Source: Diadema antillarum
Lineage: Eukaryota
DNA: 64,000 nt
Direction: 5' to 3'
Assembly (NCBI RefSeq): GCF_040938485.1
Contig: NW_027270978.1
Span: forward strand, 310,001-374,000
Under the pieces are notes generated by a model. The model was not told where the DNA came from. It searched no databases and saw nothing but the letters and a program-made list of their open reading frames with translations. The position numbers were made by a program, and so were the translations under genes. The first letter of the stretch is position 1. Each line of letters opens with the position of its first letter. Shown here piece by piece: positions 45,631 to 64,000 of this stretch.

Positions 45631-46896
45631 TATAATGGATGGTTTGAAAGCTTTGAGGACTATATCCTGATGCTCTTGCTCAGTAACACTAAACCATCAA
45701 AGGTGAAATGTAATTCTCAGGAGGGCTTAAACTTAATCTTCCACCATTTGGAACTTGCATGCAAAATATTGAAAGGGTGTATATCAGGAAATTTGCCAGG
45801 CTGATAAGATTTGCTGAAATAAACAATAGCTTTGGAGTATTTTGTAATCAATGTATAAAACATTTTGTCGTAGCCACGATTGGATATGCTCAGGATTTCA
45901 ATCAATCAATATCAATATATATCATCTTTATTGATTTCTTTATTCATTTATTTATTTATTTTTATTTATTTATTCGTGTATTTGTTTTATGATGATTGAG
46001 ATGAATAAACAAATTGAATTGAATTGAATTGAATTGAATTTACTAATCTCTTTATGCATATGTGTGCATTTTTGTATGTACACATGTATGTACACAGAGT
46101 AGCTCATTTTCAAAGCAGCGTAAATGGATGGATTGACTGAAATCTGAAAACAGCTCCAAATATGCAAGATAGAGATTACTCATTGCAGTTTTGAACACAA
46201 AATAGTTGGTACTTGTAGTAACAGTAGTTGTAACGATAATAGTAGGTCCCTATGGACAGTGGCAATAATGACCTGTTTCATTTATTGTCATTATGGTTTT
46301 CCTACTTATATTATCAGTAGGAAAAACATATATATATTTTTATTAGTATTATCAATTCATTTTACCTTAAATTTGTTGATCTGAAGTTTCATTATTTTGA
46401 ATAAACACACATACTGTGCATGTGAGGTATCAAATGTTCCATCATCTCTTTTCTTGAGAAGCAGGAGTGTATTGTTTTAATGGGCGACAAATGTGGCTGA
46501 TGTATATGAGTGAATTAGTCTTATCGTTTAAAACCTTGAGCTAAACGTTTGTTTTTGTCAACACTGGTTTTTAATCGCACCTTTTTAAAGGGATTGTCTC
46601 AGTAAAAAACCTACAATAACGCCCCAAGTCTCAAATAAACAAACCTGCAAAAGTGTCATTTCCCTTACCAGCCAGTGAGTGGCATTTAATTTGTGCTAGA
46701 GCATGCACTTACCAGTGTGAATGCTTTGCTTGTTTTTCCAGATCATGTCAGGAAATCGATATTAAGCACAAAACAAATCTAAGTTGACTGAGGAAGCATC
46801 ACCTTTCTAACAGTTTTAACAAATAGTGTCCTTCCAAATACTGTCCCTACCTTAACAGGCTCACTCAATATAGCTGTACAGTGGTCTTTTGTAATA

Positions 46897-47069
46897 CAGT
46901 CAACCTTGCTTAAGTCAACCTTGCATAAGTCGAATAATCGCCTCAGTCGAAGGTCTTTTCAAGTCCTCTTCTCTTTATGCTACATAGATTTTAATCCCTC
47001 ATTAAGTCAAATTTTAAGTGGAAGCTATTTCTTCAGTCCAAATAGACTCAACTTAGGCGAAGTTGACTG
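46897..47069. mobile_element. Tc1/pogo-like MITE with TA TSD
   Basis: ta|cagtcaaccttgcttaagt ... acttaggcgaagttgactg|ta. Confidence 0.72.
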
Positions 47070-49479
47070 TACACAGAACATCGATACAACAAATTACCAC
47101 TATCACAATGTAAGTGATTTTTATTTTCTTTTTTCTTTTTAAATGAGAAAAGAAAGATGCATAAAAATATGATCGCTGTTTAGCATTGATCTTTAATGCA
47201 CATCTGTTCATCACAAATTATTTACAACACCAATGGAAAGATGAAATGATGATGTGGTACAAGTACCCTGGTACAAGCTGTAGTCACAATTGGACACTTA
47301 TTACAAGAAGGGGGATGATAAATCCTCCATTTTTCTTTCGTACTAACAGCCCTCATTTTGACAGCGGGGGAGTGGATATCAAAACAGAAAATAAGTCACT
47401 TCCAAATGCAAAATAATGTGAAAAAAAGTGCATAAATAAAAAAACTAAGAACAATGTCAGGAGAAAGTTAAAATCTTCAAAACAACATGAAAATACCTTG
47501 ATACATTTGCATGAAATGCATTGTCACAATGAACAACAGAAATATTTCTCACTTACATTGTAGCTCTGCCATAGCTGGAGGTAGTTTGAACCTATAATTT
47601 ACACATTCTGTCTTTAAGACACTAAATGCTACAATATGCAACTTGGGTCACCACTAGACAAAGGTAGAAAGATGGAACTGTAATGCACTTGTGGTGTAGA
47701 TTTATCGGTATCCCGAAATGTGTTTCTATGAGTGACTGCATGTGTGCCCCATTGAATTATGACTGCAGGTCAATGTTCACGATATGTGTATTGGTTGGTA
47801 ATTTTCAAACATTTTCTTCCGGCACAAATCATTTACTCTTCACTAACTTCATTTAAAAGTCATGACCTGTGCAGATTAAATTAATTGAAGTTATCAGCAA
47901 GCAGGCAAAAAGAGCAAAAGAGCAAGCATAACAGGCAAAAAATGGAGAGCATGGGGGGGGGGGGGGGCAAGGGAGAAAGCAGGTAAAAATATAAACATAT
48001 AAAAACAAAAGATTGTTAAAATGAGACACAGATGTGGAGAAAAGTCAACATCTTTGCCTCCGTTGATTCAGGTGTACGAATATCAGTATGTTACTGACTC
48101 ATACACATAGCCTATCCTGGCTGCAATAACCTCAATAAAATCATATTTCCTCATTGATTTGTCGGCCAACAAGCAATTTACAAAACACACTGATGACAAC
48201 AGTAAAAGCACCACAGCTGCAAAGGAAGCAAGTGAGCAAGCATAGTGACCAGAAAAGCAAACCAGCAATGCTGTTAAAAAAAGAAAAGAAAATAAAACTG
48301 CACACCAATCAAAAATTGTTCCATCAAAGCAAAAGGGAGGAGCAACAAAATTTACCATCTTTTTGACATTCTGAATACATCAATGATACATTTCTGGGTT
48401 CATACACTCAGTTTGGAGAAATGTTATTGCTTAATTGTTACCCAACCATAACATTTGATGTTCCAAATCAAACGTATGTTCCTCTTTGTTACTCGTCTAG
48501 CAGCACACAATTTACCAAAGTTCACAAGCCATCAACCTTTTGAAGATTTAACATATAACCTTTTACAAAGTGTATACCTAGTTGATGCACATTCTCACTG
48601 AAGTAAACTGCTGTACATATTTTCATCCATATTCATCTCATCATTTTTAATGCAGAACTTGTCCGCCCAACACCTCATGATCAATATGTGTTACACAAAT
48701 CTTGCCTCACCATCGACATAAATTTCTTGCATGATACCCAATGAAAAACTGACCCATTAAATCTCCTGTTATCAAACCCAAGAGAACAAATTTTGCTCTA
48801 GTGCATTGTAAGAATCTCCACAAGAGACTTTTCAAAACCCTGTACCGTTCCTAAAAAAATTAAATTCACCAAAGTGACCACTACCCATTTTAATCCAATG
48901 CACCTCATCATCCATGTGTCTTCATCATTTGGAGGTTGACACATCTTAATACTGTTTATCTTGAGCATATTCCACATTATCGAGCAAAAGATGGCAGATG
49001 AAATCTTCACATTCATGAATACAACCAAACTTCATTTCTTCATCTGAGAAACCTATCTTGTAAGGTTGTAGCTCTAATTGAATAAGGCTGCAATAGGGAC
49101 ACAGAATGCCAATAGAACATCAATAACTTAAAATTTGTCTCATGAACTTGGCATGATGCATATACATCCGTGTATTTTGGAAGCAATTGGTCCTTTAGAA
49201 CAAAGCAGTAATTTTTCTCTCAACTAAAAGATGGTTTTGCAGTTTCTGTTCTTAGATGGGAATGACAATCTCAGGACGGCATGGTGACACTAAATTTACA
49301 ACAACAAAATTACAGGAAGAAATATGAAAATAGTCGTTCTCATTCCTTGATCTTGCGTCAAATATCTGCAAACAAAGTTGGAACCCTAGGCAGGCCTTTC
49401 AACAAGAGCTACGACCTTTGTAAAGATTTCTTTACAATTCTTTGATCGTTGCTCCACCACCAGTAGACACTGTAAAACC

Positions 49480-49557
49480 TCATTCTCCCTTGAATTTTGG
49501 CTTTCTCTTTTCCTTGAAAGCAATGAGACCCTCCATGCGATCCTGAGTCGGAATGAC
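49480..49557 (-). CDS. AUH: AUH-like methylglutaconyl-CoA hydratase, last coding exon
   Basis: [25 protein letters not shown], the AUH-type C-terminus. Confidence 0.9.
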
Positions 49558-50404
49558 CTGCAGAAAGACACGAGTATTTGAGAGAGACAAAGAACAAAGA
49601 AAGACAAAAAACTATTAAAAAATAATGAATTACTGTTTTCAGATTTTGAAGATGTATGTAAATGTGTTTCAAAATGAATTTACAGTAGGTATTAATGACA
49701 TTTTCATTTTTTAAAAACAATATTCACACTTTGTAAGCACTATGTGCTTTTGAGAAAGATATTCACGTAGTTTAAAAGTGAAATCACCCACTGCAAATCT
49801 CACAACAGAAATACTGGTAATAATAGATAGCAATGATTCAGTGGATTCATTCAAGTTGAAACTTGCAAAGAGTGGAGGGGGTGCATTGACAACTCACTGA
49901 AATCAAGATATCAGACTACAAACATTGCACACACATTACATTGAAGAGATGACAGATACACCTGTACTGTACAAATCCCAAGCTAACCCCTCACTTAGCT
50001 ACATTCATGCATGTATACTCACAAACTATAGAATGTGTAACTTGTGCTCTACACATCGCAAAATGCCCTACTCCTGCATCCTAATAATCATCACACAATA
50101 TTGTTCTGAGACCTATAAATTCACAGTGCAGACTGGACAAAACACAACTACTGGGACCATAAGTTAGTATATTTCTATCACTCTACACTTTGGCCTCTTA
50201 ACAAAGTGAGGAATTTTACTTTCTGACAATCAAATCGGGATCCATCTTTCATTTCAACATAGACCTGGCACTGGTGAATTACCATCACTGCACTAGCTTG
50301 CTTAATTAAATCAGAAAAGAAGAAAAATGAAAGAAAGAACAGAGGAAAGGGAGAAAGACAAGAAGGATGGAAAAAAGAAAGGATGACAGATAGTGAAGCC
50401 CTAC

Positions 50405-50452
50405 CTGAGCATAGTAGGCTTCTTCAAATGCCAGTCCTGTTGCCAGATCGAC
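50405..50452 (-). CDS. AUH: AUH exon 8
   Basis: VDLATGLAFEEAYYAQ; cag|/|gtag sites; 48 nt. Confidence 0.9.
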
Positions 50453-50797
50453 CTGTATATAGGGAAAAATGATGAAGACATGAACATGGTCAGGACTGAC
50501 GCAGGTAATGTTTGTTAAAATATATGATCTTCTTTGTTTGTCATGATGGCAAACCAGTATTAATTGGCAGTACAGCAAGTCATATGATCATTAGCTGATC
50601 ACGTTTGGCTTTCACATCTGCATATCATTCCGACAAAAGTGGGAAAAACAAACAAACAAAACTGTGATCAAAAATCATACTCCCTCCCTGTCACAGGAAA
50701 GATATAATCACCTGAAAACAAAATTCATAGTTGATGAAAATGGCAACTCATTTTAATTATGCTTTTTCCCCCAGTTAGACGGAGAATTTGTGATTAC

Positions 50798-50848
50798 CTC
50801 ATTTCCTTTGTTCACAGCTTTCTTCACCATTCTCAAGGCGATTGGACC
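50798..50848 (-). CDS. AUH: AUH exon 7
   Basis: GPIALRMVKKAVNKGNE; 51 nt. Confidence 0.9.
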
Positions 50849-50871
50849 CTGGAAAAAAAGAAACAAGGAAA

Positions 50872-51963
50872 AGTAGAAATTACGCGGTGCGTAATATATG
50901 TCCTCGCCGGAAGTAGCATTTAGTAGCAAAATGTACAATATAGGTAAAGAGATCAAGGTCAAAGGTCAAAGAAGTCAAAGGTCAAAATTCTGTGTTGAAG
51001 TTTTGAAGCCCTCACCTAGTGCCATCACATAAAGCAAACGGAATCGAAATCGGGTTAGAAATGGCGAAGGAGTAGCATTTTGTAGCCAATGTACAATATA
51101 GGTCAAAAAATCAAGGTCAAAGGTCAAAGAAGTCAAAGGTCAAAATTCTGTGTAGAAGTTTTGAAGCCCTCACCTAGTGCCATCACCTAAAGCACACTGA
51201 ATTGAAATCAGGTTACAAATGGCGAAGGAGTAGCATTTTGTAGCAAAATGTACAATATAGGTCAAAAATCAAGGTCAAAGGTCAAAGAAGTCAAAGGTCA
51301 AAATTCTGTGTAGCAGTTTTGAAGCCCTCACCTAGTGCCATCACCTAAAGCACACGGAATTGAAATCAGGTTACAAATGGCGAAGGAGTAGCATTTTGTA
51401 GCAAAATGTACAATATAGGTCAAAAATCAAGGTCAAAGGTCAAAGAAGTCAAAGGTCAAAATTTTGTGTAGAAGTTTTGAAGCCCTCACCTAGTGCCATC
51501 ACATAAAGCAAACGGGATCGAAATTGGGTTAGAAATGGCGAAGGAGTAGCATTTTGAAGCAAAATGTACAATATAGGTCAAAGGTCAAGGTCAAAGGTCA
51601 CAACTGAAATTCTGTGTAGAAGTTTCAAAGCTCCCATATAGTGCTATCATACAAAGCAAACAGAATCAAAATCTGGTTAGAAATGGCGAAGGAGTAGCAT
51701 TTTGAGGCAAAATGTACAATATAGGTCAAAGGTCAAGGTCAAAGGTCACAACTGAAATTCTGTGTAGAAGTTTCAAAGCTCCCATGTAGTGCTATCATAT
51801 AAAGCAAACAGAATCAAAATCGGCTCATAAATGACAGAGAAGTAGCAAATTGAACATTTTGATCACACACGGACGCACAGACGGACGGACGGACACACAG
51901 ACACACACACGTACGGAGCCCGTTTCATAGTCCCCTGCTCGAACTCGTTCGGCGGGGACAAAA
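50872..51963 (+). mobile_element. Helitron-derived (Tsp/DINE-1/HINE-like) element with internal 148-159 bp tandem repeats
   Basis: gtagca anchor at 50913, 51072, 51230, 51388, 51546, 51694 and 51842; GGTCAAAGGTCA motifs; (GACG/GACA)n microsatellite; terminal hairpin gtcccc..ggggac followed by an A-run. Confidence 0.7.
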
Positions 51964-52070
51964 AGCAAGGAGGAAATATAATTAGATAATTGTACTCATG
52001 CAAATCCATGGTTAGATATTTCTTTAACTCACTTTTCTGTTGGTGACATGAGGTCTGAAATGCAACTTAA

Positions 52071-52786
52071 CCCTATTCTAACGGGGGGCTGAAATTACCC
52101 CCCCCCCCCCCCCCCCCCCCCGCCTCGACATTTCGCACCATGATTCCGCAACTCACAAAGATTTCATGACTTTTTTTCATTTAAGTCTCCCACATATTTG
52201 CATATATGCATGTCGACCTAAAAACAGCTCAAATTCACGATATCGGGTGCAAATCCAATGCAAATTGAGGGTTTGTTTTTTAGTTAAATTTTATAAAATT
52301 GATATAAACTAAATTATTTCCACTTTTAATAATTGGAATTAATCAATTCTAATGTAGATAAGCTTGAAAAAGTGCCTACAACAAATTTTGGTCAAAAAAC
52401 AATAGAATACATTAAGAAATTAACAAAACAATAAAAAACAAAAGAAATTGACTTTGATTGTCCTATTTTCTTTCAAGAAAATTGTTTGGTGTGTCTTAAG
52501 GAATTCTGACACTAAAAATTAGCAATCCTTCAGTCTTTTTAATGGAGTTACAGATGAAAGTACAAATTCTATGCATAAATTTACAAAATCAATTTATCAA
52601 AAATAGAAAATCAATATTTTTCTATTATGTGACCATGTAATCTCGAAATTGACATCTGGCTCTATGTTCAGGCAAAATTTTGCGGCGATCCCGTCATCAG
52701 CGGCCAAGATCTGAAGGGGGGGGGGTCAAATTGACCCCCCCCCCCCAGTTAAAAACTTGGTCTCAAATAGCCCAGTTAGAATAGGG
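52071..52786. mobile_element. Non-autonomous piggyBac-like element
   Basis: ttaa|ccctattctaac ... gttagaataggg|ttaa. Confidence 0.8.
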
Positions 52787-53409
52787 TTAAGTAATGACAG
52801 TTTTACTAAAGGGCCAAACAGTACACTGTTTTAACTTTATATGAAATTGCACTGGGGAGCAGTCTGTTTCCTTATTTATGTGCAGATTAAAAGACTTGCT
52901 TCTGTATGAAACCTCCTGCATCATATCCATGGCAGACTTTGACTTTCATTCACTCGATTTTACTCCAAATTAGGGCATACACACTTTCTATTTCAAAAGG
53001 AGAATGGCAACGAAAACTGCGTGTTACACAATGTACCTGTGATTACCAAGCTAGAAAGGACTACCCATAAAGGTGACCACAAGAAAGCAAATCATCACTT
53101 ATAGGTCATAAGAGTACTCATACGATTCTACAGAAACAAGATTGACAAAGAAAGGTGTTGACAGCTGCACACAGTGAAACTGTACTAATATTAGGTAGAG
53201 ACAAGAGTTGTGTGTGTATATGTGCTGGTGTATAATCAGCCCGCTGGTGTGTTACACTTATAATTTGTCTTCATGCACATGCATGCGAACTTGTGTATGT
53301 TGGCATGCATGGGTGTGTTTGTGTGTATGCAGGTAGGGGAGAGGCGTATGGATGTGTGCATCGTATTCTTCTTAGATATCAGTCAACGAAAGCCAATTGG
53401 TAGTCGTAC

Positions 53410-53597
53410 CTGTGTCGCTATCTCTCGGGCCAGGGCAAGGGACCGGGTGTAGGCAGCTTCTTTGCTGTCATCCTGGTCAACACAGTGGTTGACTAGTCCA
53501 ATGCGGGCTGCTTCCTGTCCGTCCACCACTCGCCCGGTGAACATGAGCTCCTTGGCTACCGATGGACCAACCAATCTGGGCAGCCGCTGTGTTCCAC
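53410..53597 (-). CDS. AUH: AUH exon 6
   Basis: GGTQRLPRLVGPSVAKELMFTGRVVDGQEAARIGLVNH..AREIATQ, crotonase core; 188 nt. Confidence 0.93.
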
Positions 53598-53708
53598 CTT
53601 CACAAAGATAAAACCACAAAAGATATATAAATGCATTGTCCTCTCATTTCCTGTCTCCTTTATTTTTTCTCTGATTCTGGATAGGCCGATCCCCACTTCT
53701 TCTTTAAA

Positions 53709-54775
53709 AACAAGCCAAGTACCAAATTGTGTCTCGCCCATTCGCGTACAAGAAATTAATATTTTTCTAACTCCCAGAAGTTCATTGACCCACCTATGAC
53801 CTTTGACCTTGTGGTGACCTTCAACTCCCCAAGGGACATTTACCATCCAAGTCTGGTCACAAACGGACAAAGGGATCAAAAGTTATGAGCCATAATCGAA
53901 ACGCGCCATAAAAACTTAACAATGGGCCCTAAAAATTTGTTGACCCCTTTCTGTGACCTTTGACCTTGTGATGACCTTTCATTCCCCAAGGGACATCTAC
54001 CGTCCAAGTTTGGTCACAAACGGACTTAGGGATCAAAAGTTATGAGCCACATTCGAAATGCGCCACAAAAACTTAACATTGGGCCCTAAAAGTTTGTTGA
54101 CCCCTTTCTGTGACCTTTGACCTTGTGATGACCTTCAACTCCCAAGGGACATCTATCATCCAAGTTTGGTCACAAACGGACAAATGGATCAAAAGTTATG
54201 AGCCACAATCAAAACGCGCCCTAAAAACTTAACATTGGACCCAAAAGTACGTTGACCCCTGCCTGTGACCTTTGACCTTGTGATGACCTTCACCTTCCCA
54301 AGGGACATCTACCATCCAAGTTTGGTCACAAACGGACAAAGGGATCAAAAGTTATAAGCCATAATCAAAACGCGCCACAAAAACTTAACATTGGGCCCAA
54401 AAAGTTTGTTGTCCCCTGTCTGTGACCTTTGACCTTGAGGTAACCTTCAACTTCCCAAGGGACATGTACCATCTAAGTTTGCTCACAAACAGACAGATAC
54501 ATCAAAATTTACGAGCCATAAACGAAACGCGCCCTAAAAAGTTAACATTGGGCCCTAAAGTTCATTGACCTCTGCCGGTGACCTTTGACCTTGAGGAGCC
54601 CTTCATGTTTGGTAAAATGTGTAACTTCCCTCCAAGTTTGATTGAAATTGAAATCCTCAGTAGAGAGTTACTAAAGTTTTTGTGGCGTTACGGACAGACG
54701 ACGTACGGACGGACGACGGACGGACGGACGACGGACCTTTATCTCCCCACACCTCCGGTGGGCTCAACAAAAAAA
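53709..54775 (+). mobile_element. Second Helitron-derived minisatellite element (about 157-bp unit)
   Basis: tgacctttgacc anchor at 53797, 53954, 54111, 54266, 54423 and 54579; (GACG)n microsatellite; short 3' hairpin and A-run. Confidence 0.7.
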
Positions 54776-54825
54776 CTGAAATACAGAAATTAATTATAAT
54801 GTAGCATAAGTGATACAGCCGTATC

Positions 54826-55003
54826 AGGGAATACCCCTCCTCCCCCAAGGACAATTACCCCCGGCCAAAATACTGGTTAGTGATAAAGTTAGAATAGAGA
54901 TTACTGTTAGGGTTAGATTTAAGGTTAGAGTTTGGGTTAGGGTTAGGATTCGGGTCAGGGGAAGGGTCTGGGGTAATTCCCAGGAGGTAATTTCCCTGGA
55001 CCC
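54826..55003. repeat. Degenerate TTAGGG-like dispersed repeat
   Basis: gttagggttagatttaaggttagagttttgggttagggttagg core. Confidence 0.6.
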
Positions 55004-55676
55004 CATACAGCTCTTCTGCTCACCAAACCCAATGTATGATATACTAGTACTACATATTTTGAGCAGAAGTACTAAACACAAAGTGCACGTAAACAAAATG
55101 TTTTTCTCAGTATGGATATTTAATAAAGGTTGTAGGTGATCTGCGTACCCTAAGCGGAGCCTGTTCCCATGTGGGACTATACTGTTTCCAATTGAAGGCT
55201 CCTTCAGTTTTCAGGAATAAACCCTTATGTGAGATATGCACTAAAGAAATTGAAGTTGACATCTGAATGTAAAATATCAACTTATTCTCACATCTTAATA
55301 TAATGTTGGTTGGTTCACTGAAACACACAGGAAATGATGAAAATTGACAACGCCTATGTGGGTTGAAATTCCTCTGAACTCTACAGGTATGTGTGGCAAA
55401 ATAAATCCACACAATTTATTTGCTGTTTTGTTGACAATTATCATAACAAACTAATTTCTCCTTCAAAAGATTTGGTTTTTGAAGCACTACTCACTCTATA
55501 CATAAAATGTATATGCATTTATATCATTTTCACATCCAATCAATGAAGATACACCTAAGATGTATATCTCCATTCATGACATTTTCACATCCAAGCAATG
55601 AAATTTTACTACATATTCACTGATTTCAACAACTTGAAGGGATTTTCAGAGTCCCTCATGACAATCATTCACATAC

Positions 55677-55733
55677 CTCCTCCTGGAATAATGGCGAGTT
55701 TGGCTTCCACTAGTCCCATTTTGGCACTTGAAG
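55677..55733 (-). CDS. AUH: AUH exon 5 (second catalytic Glu, GLVE)
   Basis: ASSAKMGLVEAKLAIIPGGG; 57 nt; phase 1 to 1. Confidence 0.92.
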
Positions 55734-56359
55734 CTGCAAGAGAGAAACAGCACATCAGAATCGCTTCAATTTGCTGCCAGTGAACATACAATATGCCAAT
55801 GAATACATGGACTGAGAAATGGACTACACACTGCAAAAGTCAAGATATTGGTAAGATGTTTAGGTACAGCCAACAAACTATGCATTCATAGAGAAATATA
55901 AAATTCTATTGGACGAATATCAAGTTCATTTCCTGAACCAATAAAAAAGGTAACGTGATATAAATAAAGCATACAGTATTACACTGAGATATTGTGTTCT
56001 CTGATTCATATAGTGGATTAAATGCATGCCACTCTTGCAATGCTGTCAAAAAAAAAAAAAAAGACAGACAAACATTCACAGGCCTATTTTGTGACATTAG
56101 TCTGTACAGAAACATGCTGTCAAAAGCCTCTTGAACAAAAGTTTCTGTCAGCAAGATAAGTTCATTTTGATATGAAATACTACAGACCTACACATGGAAT
56201 ATTTTGCAGTCTGGAAGCTTTGTTTGTGTGCACACGTGTATGTTTTTCTTTTCAATTTAATGCATCACTGAATTTGCATGACAATGATACAGACGAATGG
56301 AGGAGACAAAGGAACACATACAAGAATACCTTTACCCTTGAAATCACTAACAAGCAAGT

Positions 56360-56791
56360 TACTGTAAAAGTGGTTTCTTTCGCGGTGGTTTTATTTTCGC
56401 GCTTTTCGCGCTTTGAGGTTGAACCACGAATTTAACATCACGCGAAAATGTTTTGAACTCGCCGTTTGTTACAACGCTATTGCGCACATGCACACACGAA
56501 GATTCCGCGCACTGAGTGTATTGATGGTCAACACACACACAGCGATACCGCACAATCTTATAAAGTACTTGAGAGACGGGATTTCAGGTAAGTCTGTCTT
56601 TAATTCTAATTTCTATTTGATAAATAAAAGAATAATTGGATTACAGTTTGGGTCTTCATGTGCAAAATAAAGCTTTTGCCGACTGTGAATTCACAGATTT
56701 TGCCGACCGCGAATTTAAACACACGCGAAAAAGTCGGCACCGATGGAAACCACGAAAGTATCTGTACGCAAAAGAAACCACTTTTACAGTA
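56360..56791. mobile_element. MITE with TACTGTAAAAGTGG termini
   Basis: tactgtaaaagtggtttcttt ... aaagaaaccacttttacagta. Confidence 0.78.
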
Positions 56792-57667
56792 ACTGAAAGC
56801 AATCCAGCATGACAAATTAATCACCTAAAATTTCCACAGCACAATACAAACATCACAGTCATTTCACTCATTAGCAACACTAGCAGAGCTCACCGGTACC
56901 AACGTACATGCATTATGCTCATGACTGTGGTTTCTTTTGGATGAAATGAGTAGAGCATTTTGGACTTTGACACAAGGCTATACTGAATATGAAATATAAT
57001 ATTTACACAATATTCACTATGGCAACACCAATTTCATTTCTTATAAATTTCATTTATTCATTATTTTTTTCTGATCTACAACTAACAAGGCTATTTCAGA
57101 GTGCTAAAACATTGGCAAAGTAAGCACATGAGCAACCAAGTATGAACAAAAAAGTAATATGCTGGCCCACATGTAAAACAGGAAGCAAGAAAGTATAATG
57201 ATAGTACATCTCGGCTCTAAAGGAGCAATACAAGGACAAAAATTCCCAAATATAGTGTCAATATAAGCATGGTCATTAATTTCAAAACTCTGGAGAAGAC
57301 GAAAAAATGTTGAAATGAAATAAGGTGTAATAACAAAGTTGCAAATGTAGCTCTATCAAATCCGCAATGAGCAAGAAAAAGATATGTACATATAGAGGTG
57401 GAAAGGTTGGTATTCTATAAGTGAGCACATCAGAAGTCTGCAGCAGAGGACTGGAGCAATCTGAAGTCAGAGTCCTGGTTACCTTAAAATGGATAGAATG
57501 GCAGTAGTAAAGAAAGATAAAGGTGTGCTGAGTCTACATTCTGGCAAATGCACAAGCACAATCAGCATAGCAAACAAAACCTATCAAGGAAACAGCATGA
57601 TATCATCAAGCCAGCCCAGGAGAAAACATGCATGTTTGTTTGTCATTGGATTAATGGACTGTCTCAC

Positions 57668-57847
57668 CAGCTACCATCATGTCACATGACAGGGCCATCT
57701 CTAGGCCGCCGCCCACGGCAACGCCGTCAAGAGCCGCTATGGTAGGCATGGGCAGGTCACCGAACTCGAGGATGGTCTTGCGCAATCGTGCGACAAACGG
57801 ACCAACTTCTTCCTGTGGCATCTTTATTCGTTCCTTCAGGTCGGCTC
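57668..57847 (-). CDS. AUH: AUH exon 4b (one of two tandem alternative copies)
   Basis: [60 protein letters not shown]; 180 nt; cag|/|gtgag sites. Confidence 0.9.
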
Positions 57848-57932
57848 CTGGGGGAACGTAAAAACACAGTCGGGAGAGGGAGATAACACATCAGTGCTAT
57901 CAACTGCGAAAGCGAAACTGCAAACAACTTAC

Positions 57933-58112
57933 AGGCGACTCTCATGTCGCAGCTTAGTGCCATCTCCATTCCCCCGCCCACGGCGACCCCGTCGATGGCA
58001 GCTATGGTCGGCATGGGCAAGTCACCCAGATCCAGAATCAGCTGGCGCCCTCTACTGACGGCTGGGCCCACCTCGTGCTCCTTCATCATGATACGCTCTT
58101 TCAAATCCGCAC
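57933..58112 (-). CDS. AUH: AUH exon 4a (one of two tandem alternative copies)
   Basis: [60 protein letters not shown]; 180 nt; tag|/|gtaagt sites. Confidence 0.88.
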
Positions 58113-58164
58113 CTAAAGTGTCGGCACATTGGATCACAATATACGTTCCTTGGCATTTCAGGAC

Positions 58165-58377
58165 TACTGTAAAAGTGGAAATTTTCGCGGTGTTGAAATT
58201 TTCGTGCATTTCGCGCAACCAGAAACTAGCGTGAAAATAAAAGCACGCGAATACTTTTGCTTGCCATATGTTTCAGTAGTTTATGTCTTGATTCTGCGGA
58301 ATTAAAAACACGCGAAACTCTTCTTAGCCGGCTGAGCGCAAAAAGTTAATCGCCGGAAAATGTCCACTTTTACAGTA
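58165..58377. mobile_element. MITE of the same TACTGTAAAAGTGG family, about 52 nt from the AUH exon 4a acceptor
   Basis: tactgtaaaagtgga ... tccacttttacagta. Confidence 0.78.
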
Positions 58378-58822
58378 TCTACTTCTCAAAGCAAATTTCT
58401 GCATACCTGTACTACTTACATTGCCCTTTAGAGAGCTAAATATGGGAACTAGTGACACATATAATTATAATTGTCCATGTCAATGGTTTTACATATCAAC
58501 ATACTGATCAGAGCCCTTCTTCCAAGCTCAGCAGATCAAAAATGATAATGATGGACTATTATCAAAATAATCTGAAGAACCATGATATCTAATTTTGGTA
58601 AAAAATGGGAACATTTGCAGAAAAACATGCTCTATCATTTCAGAAAAAAACTTCAAAATATACTATCTAACTTTACATAACTAAAGACATATTGTACTAA
58701 TGCACAAGTCATCAGACTCACTTATTATGGCTTTGAGGTTGAGTAATATAAAATGTCATCTCAAATGAAAGAAGACTACAATGTATTTAATGAAAGCAAA
58801 GGATGAATTCATGGATCCAAAC

Positions 58823-58910
58823 CTGCACAGAAAATTCCAGGGACTTCACTTCTGATGACAACTGCTCTGACATTGTTATCAAACTTTACCGACATCACCG
58901 CCTCTTCCAT
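58823..58910 (-). CDS. AUH: AUH exon 3
   Basis: MEEAVMSVKFDNNVRAVVIRSEVPGIFCAG; 88 nt. Confidence 0.9.
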
Positions 58911-59730
58911 CTAGAATGTAAAGACAATTTCAATTTAAATTTATTTTCAGCTTTCATATCAAAATGTCACATAATACAAAAACTACAAAGTCTTACAAAT
59001 TAGGTGAAATGTGCTGGGGCTGTATCCTTTTGTTATTTAGACTAGCAGCCAACAAACAGAATCGAAAATCACGACTTTTTCTTACAATATCTAATGTTTT
59101 AAATAGGCATAGAATATTTCCCAAAGTTTGTTGAGAGTAAAAGCAACTTTTGTACAACCCAAATGGCATCAAGAAGTCTGATTATTGCACTGACAGCTTG
59201 TACAGTAAAAGTTACTATCATTTTCATTTGGAAATTGCTATAGCAACAGGGCCCAGCAGGTCTCAAAACTCAAATAGAGTGTATATTGTATGCTGAGAAT
59301 TGAGGTGTTCCTCCTTTATTTTGATTTTTTGCTGAATGTGTAAAAAACAAACAAACAAACAAACAAACAAACAAACAAAGGGTCCAGCAGGTCTCAAAAC
59401 TCATAAAGAAGGTATACTTTATGCTTGGAGGATCGAGTTGTTCCTCTTTTATTTTGATTTCTTGCCAAATATGTAAAAAACAAACAAAGAGTGTACAGGT
59501 ATCTGTAGAATCTAAGCCATATACATAAAGACATTTACAAAGATAATTTCTTATTCTGATGCACCAGATACTGGTATATCTTTATATACGTGTAGCTGGC
59601 ACATGTATTGCAAATTTCATGATCTGGATTTGTCTTTCATCCCTTCCTTCACTGGAATGATGAACTTTTGTCACGGGTGTTTTATTTGAGAGAAAATATT
59701 TCATAAATACAAATATCAAAGGATACTTAC

Positions 59731-59798
59731 TAGTCTTAGAAGGTTTTTGCTGATTGCATTCTTGGCTTCAGGTCTGTTCAGTCCAAGGACAACAATTT
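59731..59798 (-). CDS. AUH: AUH exon 2
   Basis: EIVVLGLNRPEAKNAISKNLLRL; 68 nt. Confidence 0.9.
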
Positions 59799-60101
59799 CT
59801 GTTGTTAGAAAAAAAAAAGCAATTTTATCAACAAACTGCTATGGGCGCATTATAACATTCCACACTTTTTCTCACAAATTTTGAAGCAACTAATAGTGTA
59901 ATGCCCTATTATGCAGTATTCATGTGTGTTTGTAAATGACACATTCAAGGTGGAAGGATACTTGGCGATTGTGAAAAACAATATCTAGGGTCTAACTGCC
60001 AAGTAAATGTTGTACAAGGTCACTTCTGCAAATATTGTTATGGTTCACTTTCCCACTGTCCGGTGATGATATACCGGTACATATCTACTTTAAATGGTAT
60101 A

Positions 60102-60284
60102 CAGTGCAATTCCAATATAACAAACATGGTTTTAACAAAATTCCGGTTACAACGCAATAAGAATCAGGTCCAACATTATCCTTTCTATGTTTTTTATTGT
60201 TTATTTGTTTGGTTACAACGAAATTTCAATATGATGAAAGAAAATTACCGGTCCCAAGGACTTCTTTACAACAGGAGTCCACTG
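60102..60284. mobile_element. Pogo/Tigger-like MITE (same family as 45460-45630)
   Basis: ta|cagtgcaattcc ... ggagtccactg|ta. Confidence 0.68.
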
Positions 60285-61469
60285 TAATTTGAAATGTAGT
60301 ATGCCTACATATACATTGTGCGAAATTTTAGTGAAGGGTAAACAGAATTTTTGTCTACAAGAGAAATAGATACAGATTTACAATTCTTGTAACCATAAAA
60401 TCTTCAATCTGAACATAGACCATTTGTGTGTGCCCGTCTCAAACCCTCAAAAAGTTGCAGATTAGGGTTCTCAGTTATGGACCAAAATGGCCATTTGGGT
60501 TGACTGACTCAAACTTTTAATGTTTGTCTTGCATGGGAGGGTAATCCCTTCTCTACCTTTTATCAAAATTTGGCAACAGAGAGAGAAAAAAAAAAAATTC
60601 AGGTATTTGCAGACAGTTTTTCTGGACCATTTTTTAATCTTTTTTTTTTTTTTTTACAGGTGCTGCTTCGCTTCATTTTTCACTGATACTTCCGCACAGC
60701 ACGCCTGAGTGACCATATCTTTAAATCCTCTTTTCTCCTTTTTGTATGAAACTGCATCTCCTAACTCTCTAGTCTTACACAGACATCTCATCCGGTCAAT
60801 GGATTTGAAATTTGTGCACAAACCCGTGATGTGTGCGCATGCGCTGGCAGTCAATTCAGTGTAGCTCTCCCAGGTTCCTCTCGACCGGTTCACATTAAGT
60901 CATCAATTCGAACAGAAAGGGACGTTTGGCAGAACCAAACGTTGCACGTTACCTGTTGTCAACACTTTAACTTCACCTGTAAGTCTTCAAATTGAAGAAA
61001 TTTTTCGATTTTAAGTTGATATTTATCCGCGATACTATCCCTGTCATGATCCTGAATGCTACAGTCCGCAGCCTCATTACGCTACGTAGTATACGTTTGG
61101 GGCTGCTGCCCAGTGCTGGTCGCATTTACATCTTTTAATTGCATTTGGACCTAGGCCTATCATAAATGACAAATCGTCCATGAGTTGCCAACTTTATAGA
61201 TAACAGAAGTCATATAAAACAGACAGTGTTCTAGTTGTCTAGTGACGTGTCTGACTGTCTATATTGTTTCTACTAAACGAGCATAGTCCCGGTAGCGTAG
61301 AGGGCGCTGTTGATGATACTGCCGATCACCATTAGCATTGAGATACGAAGATTACCGAAGTTGAGCTGTCATCAAGAGTATTGTAAAGTGCGTAGCTGTT
61401 GCCAAGTAACATTGCCTTCATTGTCTTTTCTGCGCATCGTGCAGTCTGTAGTAATGCAAGGGTGCGTGC

Positions 61470-62115
61470 ATATCAGTTCGGGAAACCCACTCACAAGGGG
61501 GGCCCCTCCTTATAAGTAACCTGTCCCCCTTATAAGTAACCCCCGGGGCACCCCTTATAAGGAGTCTCCACGCTTTTTTGCAATGCAACGCGAAAATGAA
61601 AGGACTGCGGCAATTCGCTTGATTATGTCCATAAAGCTTCACAAGTTTCCTAGTTACTCACGAAATTTGAGCAAAATCGGTTCGAGGCATCATATCTAAA
61701 ATCATGGATTTAAATGCGATGTCAAACGACCCATGCGAATGCTGAAATGCGAGCGATTACTGGCGCGAGTGTCGCCAGGCGCGGCGGCGCGGCAATGCTT
61801 GAGTGCAGACGTGGCGACTGAGTACGGAGACTTTCGTTCATTCAGGTGGCTTTAAATGAAGGAAAAATAACAAAAGTAACGAAATAGTCAACCACCTACC
61901 TTTGCAATTGGTATGCATATATACAAAAGGATACGTTCCCATAGGGTTGTCCAGTTGAAGTCGTCCCTAAACAAAAATTTTAAGTTGAAACTTGCAAGTT
62001 TCGCCGATGAAGCTTGAAATTTCCAACAGCTCCCGCATTCAGCACGTTGTTCAGCGCAGCTCTGCGCAGCTATAAGGAGGGGCCCCCCTTGTGAGTGGGT
62101 TTCCCGAACTGATAT
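61470..62115. mobile_element. About 650-bp non-autonomous DNA transposon with 45-bp perfect TIRs in AUH intron 1
   Basis: atatcagttcgggaaacccactcacaaggggggcccctccttata at 61470-61514 and its exact reverse complement at 62071-62115. Confidence 0.82.
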
Positions 62116-62661: not shown

Positions 62662-62818
62662 CTCCATCGTCGAGGTAATTAACACGTAGGTCATCGGGGG
62701 ATGAACTATATCTACACGTTTGAGTAAGCAGATATTGTCTCCTTACGACTGCTCGCGACTTTAGCAAACCAGAACTGGCAGAAGATCGCAGCAGGAGTTT
62801 CGCCATGTAAGTCGCCAT
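62662..62818 (-). CDS. AUH: AUH exon 1 (mitochondrial targeting-like peptide)
   Basis: MATYMAKLLLRSSASSGLLKSRAVVRRQYLLTQTCRYSSSPDDLRVNYLDDG: R/S/L-rich and acid-free N-terminus; donor GGAG|gtttgt, phase compatible with exon 2. Total about 304 aa with one exon 4. Confidence 0.82.
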
Positions 62819-63340
62819 CTTGAAAACCACGCCTCCTCCTCGCTCGGCTTGCCAGTTGCCTTGATATGCAGGTGGTATTAAAGAAAAAATAATAATTCTA
62901 ATGCAAATTAAAAAACAGAAGATATCCATTTCATTTTGTTCAGTTAGATATTTACTATATTTTGATTAATATTAATGTTTTGGGCAATTACCTTCAAATG
63001 GGACAAAATCATCTCACTTTCCCATTCGATTGTCATGATTGTAAGTTGTGCATCATATCATATCATGCAGCGCACGCACGCAGCGCATGCAGCGCGCGCA
63101 TACGAGTGAATGAACGTACTGTACATACAAGTACCAGGGAGGTGCAATACGTGCACCTCCCTGGTACGTCGTACCATATACTGTAGTGTGGCTGTGAAAA
63201 TCAACTCGCAAGGATCCAGGAGGATCGAGACGCCCTAGAAATCGGCGACAGACCGTGAAACTTTTACGTGCTACGAACAGAAAGAATCGTGGGAGAATTT
63301 CAAACATTTTCTTCTTCGAACAGGGGAGATGCAGAAGAAG
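62819..63340. promoter_or_regulatory. Bidirectional promoter region between AUH and p38 MAPK
   Basis: Divergent ATGs about 520 nt apart; CpG-rich; NRF1-like GCGCATGC near 63083, YY1-like AAGATGGCG at the AUH start, perfect 16-bp palindrome at 63131-63167. Confidence 0.55.
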
Positions 63341-63480
63341 ATGTCTGCTTCCAATCCCAATGCTCCGCTGCCGTTGCCGCCGGGATATCATCGCATGGAA
63401 CTGAACAAAACCGAGTGGGAAGTCCCTGATCGGTACGTGCAGTTGGAGCCTGTGGGATCAGGCGCCTACGGACAAGTATG
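63341..63480 (+). CDS. MAPK14: p38 MAP kinase (MAPK14-like), coding exon 1
   Basis: [46 protein letters not shown]: the p38 ELNKTxWEVPxRY signature and Gly loop; donor TG|gtgagt (phase 2). An upstream in-frame ATG exists at 63329. Confidence 0.93.
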
Positions 63481-64000
63481 GTGAGTACAGTACATATGGA
63501 TATTTCTGCTGCTGCCGTCGAGTCTACACGGGACACCATGCACCACCACCAAGCACCACCCGTGCTGCATGCTGAGTGCTTCATAGTTCATGTCCAATGT
63601 AGCTGGCAGAAGCACTGTAAATTACTGTGCAGGGCAGGGGGGGGGGGCATGTTTGAATGGGTTGTTTTGGTTGTGTTGATTTATTGTTGTCTTGATTTAT
63701 CGCCTTCATAGGATAGATAAAACCTAAAACTTTCGGCTTGTAACGCCCTACAATGTACATCTTTGAAAACTGGGAGTGGGAGTATTAAAAAACCCCAGTT
63801 TTCAGCCAGCCTCCAATCCATGTTTATGGCTCCAGATTCCGGACACTTCCTTCACTTATCACAAGCCAGCAAATTCTACTGTCACAAAACATGCATATAA
63901 TTTCACATCATTTCACATAATAACTGGCACTCTCTTTCACAACAGCTAACAGGAAAGTACCTGAGCTGAGGGAAATGTTGCAATTATTTCAAAGTTAAGG

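Follow-up and report, generated by a model that had tools for sequence, protein, structure and literature searches.

The window analyzed here, a stretch of 64,000 nt of genomic DNA from the sea urchin Diadema antillarum, contains on its minus strand a gene whose nine coding exons we placed between positions 62818 and 49480 by alignment of retrieved AUH proteins. The gene is the orthologue of AUH (3-methylglutaconyl-CoA hydratase), and its fourth exon is present in two versions, here called 4a and 4b. The product spliced with exon 4a has 304 amino acids and corresponds letter for letter to XP_071495285.1 of D. antillarum, which is named 'methylglutaconyl-CoA hydratase, mitochondrial-like' in RefSeq, and the product spliced with exon 4b is the same as XP_071485711.1 from exon 3 on. 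When the 59-aa peptides of the two exons were searched singly, they matched Pfam ECH_1 at profile positions 57-115 with 38.2 and 35.1 bits, above the curated cut-off of 27 bits. The best PDB match of each exon was human AUH (1HZD, residues 74-132, with 71 and 72 bits), which reads EVGPFVSK in the segment matching exon 4, and 1HZD was also the best PDB match of the whole 4a model. The profile, the catalytic residues and the fold assign the product to the crotonase / enoyl-CoA hydratase superfamily.

Features of the AUH locus, in window positions (exons in order of transcription, followed by neighbouring elements)
Feature	Position	Strand	Length	Description
AUH coding exon 1	62662-62818	minus		ATG at 62818; presequence; ends in phase 1
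AUH exon 2	59731-59798	minus	68 nt	
AUH exon 3	58823-58910	minus	88 nt	ends ...IFCA plus base 1 of a Gly codon completed by either exon 4
AUH exon 4a	58112-57933	minus	180 nt	phase 1-1; AG before, donor GTAAGT; ADLKER...GPAVSRGR...GGGME
Intron between 4a and 4b	57932-57848	minus	85 nt	
AUH exon 4b	57847-57668	minus	180 nt	phase 1-1; AG before, donor GTGAGA; ADLKER...GPFVARLR...GGGLE
AUH exon 5	55677-55733	minus	57 nt	phase 1-1; second catalytic Glu (LVEAK)
AUH exon 6	53410-53597	minus	188 nt	
AUH exon 7	50798-50848	minus	51 nt	
AUH exon 8	50405-50452	minus	48 nt	
AUH exon 9	49480-49557	minus		includes the stop codon
p38 MAPK-like kinase, first coding exon	63329-63484	plus		
MITE-like element	58165-58377			intron 3
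MITE-like element	56357-56794			intron after 4b
Tandem repeat	53797-54593			157-nt unit; intron between exons 5 and 6
Internally repeated stretch	about 50912-51854			intron between exons 6 and 7

Repeated sequence is found in the introns on either side of exon 6, and the tandem array between exons 5 and 6, with 87% matches, comprises 5.1 copies of its unit. Upstream of the gene and in head-to-head orientation to it, at a distance of about 510 nt from its start codon, lies the first coding exon of a p38 MAPK-like kinase, and in the allelic contig described below a Pkinase gene is found at the matching place beside AUH. This arrangement suggests that the two genes share a bidirectional promoter.

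The preliminary description of this DNA reported two homologous exons of 180 nt, both in phase 1 to 1, open and flanked by AG and GT, at a distance of 85 nt from each other, and its coordinates and quoted motifs proved to be exact. Both exons have GT-AG splice sites and are open in the frame fixed by exons 3 and 5; their phase follows from the fact that the last base of exon 3 is base 1 of a Gly codon and that exon 5 starts with two codon-completing bases. As a result, the codon at the junction with exon 5 encodes Ser when 4a is used and Ala when 4b is used, Ala being also the residue of human AUH. The two exons are identical at 120 of 180 nucleotides (67%) and at 45 of 59 amino acids (76%), and a tblastn search of one exon against the other inside the window gave an E value of about 2e-26, far beyond chance. 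Exons 4a and 4b, which are adjacent, homologous, equal in length and phase and provided with their own splice sites, are a tandem exon duplication. No third copy of exon 4 was found inside the window, where the sole trace was a 17-nt match to the start of 4a at 57350-57366 (16/17, E 0.11), on the same strand as exon 4b and about 300 nt downstream of it. This match is too weak to be called a relic, and could be due to chance or be the last remnant of a third copy.

The D. antillarum assembly (GCA_040938485.1) holds the locus in two allelic contigs. Positions 46480-61910 of the window are 100% identical to contig JBFRCO010000090.1, and the second contig, JBFRCO010000020.1, is about 97.7% identical across its longest aligned blocks, and its intron 1 is much longer. 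Both contigs contain 4a and 4b, with a spacing of 85 nt in each. RefSeq has annotated on JBFRCO010000090.1 the 229-aa model XP_071485711.1, which uses 4b and is truncated, starting at exon 3 although the window has intact exons 1 and 2, and on JBFRCO010000020.1 the 304-aa model XP_071495285.1, which uses 4a. The allelic contigs were thus handled differently and the isoform pair is missing for this species, an omission that is correctable.

Such isoform pairs, with exon 4 and the Ser/Ala junction codon as their sole difference, are found in the RefSeq annotation of four other species: D. setosum (X2/X1), Lytechinus variegatus (X1/X2), Strongylocentrotus purpuratus (X1/X2) and L. pictus, in which X1 and X3 versus X2 and X4 represent two N-termini combined with the two forms of exon 4. 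Exon 4a is the one used in D. setosum X2, Lytechinus X1/X3 and S. purpuratus X1, and the two S. purpuratus forms are encoded by XP_003723843.1 and XP_782821.1. Altogether, the 11 RefSeq models, which represent five urchin species, all contain exactly one copy of exon 4, and a model with both copies or with neither is not among them. The NCBI pipeline normally gives alternative variants only with transcript support. Additionally, in a transcript-like contig from a distant species (L003), 313 codons run uninterrupted and a 4a-type segment is joined to sequence of the exon 3 and exon 5 types.

Comparison among sea urchins indicates that the duplication is ancient. The preliminary description proposed to look for both exons across echinoderms and hemichordates. 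Among sea urchins, the same exon order, with 180 nt in each exon and AG/GT at their borders, is found in the two contigs of D. antillarum, in D. setosum, in S. purpuratus and in two urchin-like contigs (L001 and L002). In the tree of exon 4 peptides, the echinoid 4a sequences form a clade with support 96/93 and the 4b sequences a clade with support 89/84. Since Diadema and the camarodonts are present in each of these clades, the duplication is older than the split between them, which goes back some 200-270 million years. The comparison of 4a with 4b shows saturation at synonymous sites (pS 0.81, with pN 0.18) and a dN/dS of 0.05 in the C-terminal half; between species, the dN/dS of orthologous exons is 0.05-0.11 for each exon. 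A dead exon would not be intact after so much synonymous change, and the substitution data indicate that strong purifying selection has acted on both exons from a time before Diadema and the camarodonts separated. Within the helix that the segment encodes (positions 13-29), 2 columns are variable among the 4a exons versus 8 among the 4b exons. Outside the urchins, an AUH expressed by a distant species (P0288) carries the KEHEVGPAVSRGR signature as in 4a, and the grouping of its exon with echinoid 4a was not rejected (AU p 0.75). The whole-protein tree did not place P0288 with the urchins.

These observations point to a gene in which exon 3 would be joined to either 4a or 4b and then to exon 5, the two copies being spliced singly, with two 304-residue mitochondrial AUH isoforms as the outcome. 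We regard it as highly probable that 4a and 4b are tandem duplicates spliced one at a time to give two AUH isoforms, the exclusivity being drawn from the RefSeq models. The earlier proposal that the exons are mutually exclusive is therefore upheld at the level of public gene models, each of which includes a single copy. Transcripts with double inclusion or double skipping may still occur at a low level, since 180 is a multiple of 3 and they would remain in frame and escape nonsense-mediated decay.

Two other explanations of the pair have to be weighed. If only one exon were truly used, the other would be a silent or rarely spliced relic that had been modelled through protein homology, and the pyrimidine tract at the 3' splice site of 4a, which is weak in every species examined, would agree with this. 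However, both exons are intact in six genomes or contigs, at exactly 180 nt and with AG/GT, and a relic would not retain the low dN/dS of each exon at nearly saturated synonymous sites. It is moreover 4a whose helix is the more conserved of the two, and the 4a-type exon of L003 is part of a complete reading frame, so that we consider this explanation very improbable. The inclusion of both exons together, constitutively or often, would produce a protein with a tandem repeat of 60 residues; the reading frame would be kept by the 180-nt length, and an intron of 85 nt is long enough for splicing in many animals. In contrast to this expectation, no RefSeq model of the five species has both exons, and the single-copy AUH proteins of other animals align to both exons across the same residues. 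The segment, in addition, supplies the crotonase fold with a core strand, helix alpha3 and the catalytic loop, and for this reason a tandem repeat of it would disrupt the fold. There is very little chance that double inclusion is constitutive or frequent, slightly less even than that of a single exon in use, and splicing of one copy at a time is the explanation that we retain. A protein prediction from another organism (P0001, 272 aa) does show the crotonase segment twice in tandem, with about 70 residues repeated, and is either a gene model in which both copies of a duplicated exon were included or an assembly artefact.

How exclusion could be achieved was also considered. Nonsense-mediated decay cannot enforce it, since double inclusion or skipping stays in frame. 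The intron between the two exons measures 85 nt in both contigs of D. antillarum, 84 nt in D. setosum, 93 nt in S. purpuratus, 92 nt in L002 and 382 nt in L001. In the window its 3' half is long and pyrimidine-rich, and a CTGAT motif resembling a branch point is located about 42 nt from the 4a donor. In some vertebrate genes, a distant branch point followed by a long pyrimidine tract in a short intron sterically blocks the joining of neighbouring exons, and the short intron of 84-93 nt, with its distant branch point, could in the same way block double inclusion in Diadema and S. purpuratus. Steric blocking cannot be a general mechanism, given the 382 nt of the L001 intron. No convincing competing RNA structure was detected: the fold of 57640-58140 reached only z = -1.96, and the inverted repeats that were found belong to MITE-like elements of the flanking introns. 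These two elements bracket the exon pair and possess related terminal inverted repeats (TACTGTAAAAGTGG...), their arms being about 80% complementary between the elements.

To describe what the exchange of exons changes in the protein, we compared the two versions across seven species or contigs, and only four positions were diagnostic: position 17 (Ala in 4a, Phe in 4b), position 21 (Gly in 4a, Leu in 4b), position 28 (Leu in 4a, Phe or Tyr in 4b) and position 60, which is the junction codon with Ser or Ala. AlphaFold2 gives the same fold for both isoforms, with pLDDT above 90 outside the presequence, and locates positions 17, 21 and 28 at i, i+4 and i+11 of a single 19-residue helix alpha3 in both of them (residues 116-134 in the 4a protein and 113-131 in D. 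setosum X1). Superposition of the 4a model on 1HZD gave a TM score of 0.97, an rmsd of 1.1 A and 62% identity, and crotonase structures were matched at probability 1.00. Both exons share the Arg of ADLKER, the Ala and Gly of the oxyanion hole and, in GGG[M/L]E, the first catalytic Glu.

The oxyanion hole and catalytic Glu residues of the crotonase Ms3HPCD are Ala65, Gly110, Glu113 and Glu133 (PMC6048173). With a constant offset of 64, Ala1, Gly46 and Glu49 of the exons correspond to Ala65, Gly110 and Glu113 of this enzyme; the alignment with its structure (5ZAI) covers positions 17-59, so that Ala1 is equated with Ala65 from the offset, the register being backed by Gly110 and Glu113. Position 17 of the exons aligns with Phe81 of Ms3HPCD, a residue described as sitting at the acyl-pocket bottom in a study which concludes that helix alpha3, together with pocket residues, sets specificity in the crotonase family (PMC6048173). 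This correspondence supports the view that the exchange alters the acyl pocket. Human AUH and the bacterial LiuC have Phe at position 17 and a hydrophobic residue at position 21, as 4b does, and for that reason 4b is the canonical version and 4a the derived one. The preliminary description had placed the change from Phe to Ala in the substrate pocket and proposed that this and the change from Leu to Gly enlarge it. The former agrees with the alignment of the site to the pocket bottom, and the argument is weaker for the latter, because Ms3HPCD has Gly at site 21 and a small pocket. Ala at site 17 is likewise found in a homologue from Bacillus anthracis (3KQF), and Ala17 and Gly21 alone are consequently no proof of a larger pocket or of a new specificity.

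Two readings of this difference deserve similar attention. Exon 4a could reshape the bottom of the acyl pocket and thereby change substrate preference or kinetics, which we hold as a tentative proposal with somewhat less than an even chance of being right. Alternatively, the exons may be exclusive and the isoforms may differ in stability, hexamer assembly, regulation, mitochondrial sub-location or the RNA binding of AUH, and this too is a serious possibility, if not a probable one. It agrees with the identity of the catalytic and oxyanion residues and of the ADLKER Arg in the two exons, and with the presence of Ala17 or Gly21, one without the other, in enzymes whose pocket is ordinary or small. 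The single exon of a plankton contig (L004) shows Thr17/Gly21 and no other form, so that small residues at these sites need not imply a second activity. Against it, the fixed differences include three side chains along helix alpha3, one of which maps to the pocket bottom, and the RNA-binding lysines of human AUH are part of a preceding helix, for which the urchin gene has exons 2-3. A still stronger version of the change in the acyl pocket, in which 4a would be a separate enzyme whose altered pocket takes a substrate other than 3-methylglutaconyl-CoA, and would be older than the echinoids in view of P0288, seems to us unlikely. If it were true, the choice of an exon would have given one gene two crotonase activities over several hundred million years.

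The 4a/4b pair was found only in echinoids. Several sequences from elsewhere were examined as candidates for a comparable pair or isoform and rejected. The two isoforms of the amphioxus Branchiostoma lanceolatum (X1 and X2) differ only at the N-terminal exon, and the plankton exon with GPTVAKGR (P0148/L004) is single-copy in its contig. Proteins of the P0465 type, with GPAVARGR, were discarded as an animal isoform, as they are encoded by intronless ORFs in compact Tara Oceans contigs. Among the Tara Oceans sequences, four contigs (L007-L010) contain intronless AUH-like ORFs of 304 aa with Ala17/Gly21, in compact same-strand arrays beside an RNase H gene, and their proteins group weakly near the sea urchins in the protein tree; a compact eukaryote, a virus and a mobile element are the candidates for their source.

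A full-text literature search returned no paper that ties AUH or methylglutaconyl-CoA hydratase to mutually exclusive exons or to sea urchins. The earlier statement that no such report is known for AUH accordingly holds for papers and fails for databases, since RefSeq already lists both forms in four species. Mutually exclusive tandem exons are well known; it is rarer for such an exchange to affect the active site of an enzyme of core metabolism, and these cases are directly testable. In AUH, the exchange concerns a few residues of a helix that structural work elsewhere has tied to substrate choice in crotonases, and the near invariance of 4a among urchins makes the pair an experiment of nature on the part that pocket residues play in crotonase specificity. 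It also suggests that AUH may serve a second reaction in sea urchins.

The AUH pair can be compared with the mutually exclusive exons that arose by tandem duplication in human genes (PMC9741552, PMC8373072), such as 7a/7b of ATE1 (PMC7797038). Like these, the two AUH exons are adjacent and equal in length and phase, occur as one copy per gene model, and are ancient and under purifying selection; apart from the exchanged segment, the isoforms do not differ, as in the known cases. Human AUH was absent from the cases that we found, and in the urchin gene the swapped segment is part of a crotonase active site. The human enzyme (1HZD, 2ZQQ) has the same catalytic motifs as urchin AUH and shares with 4b Phe17 and the Ala that follows ...RVA. 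Among the retrieved vertebrate AUH proteins the segment has a single form, in which the Ala17, Gly21 and Leu28 of 4a are not seen. Ms3HPCD (5ZAI) and MxLiuC (5JBX) are short-chain crotonases, and the Arg of ADLKER in urchin AUH corresponds to Arg69 of LiuC. In these enzymes, however, the different helices belong to separate genes of different organisms, whereas the two versions of the helix in sea urchins are provided by one gene through the choice of splicing.
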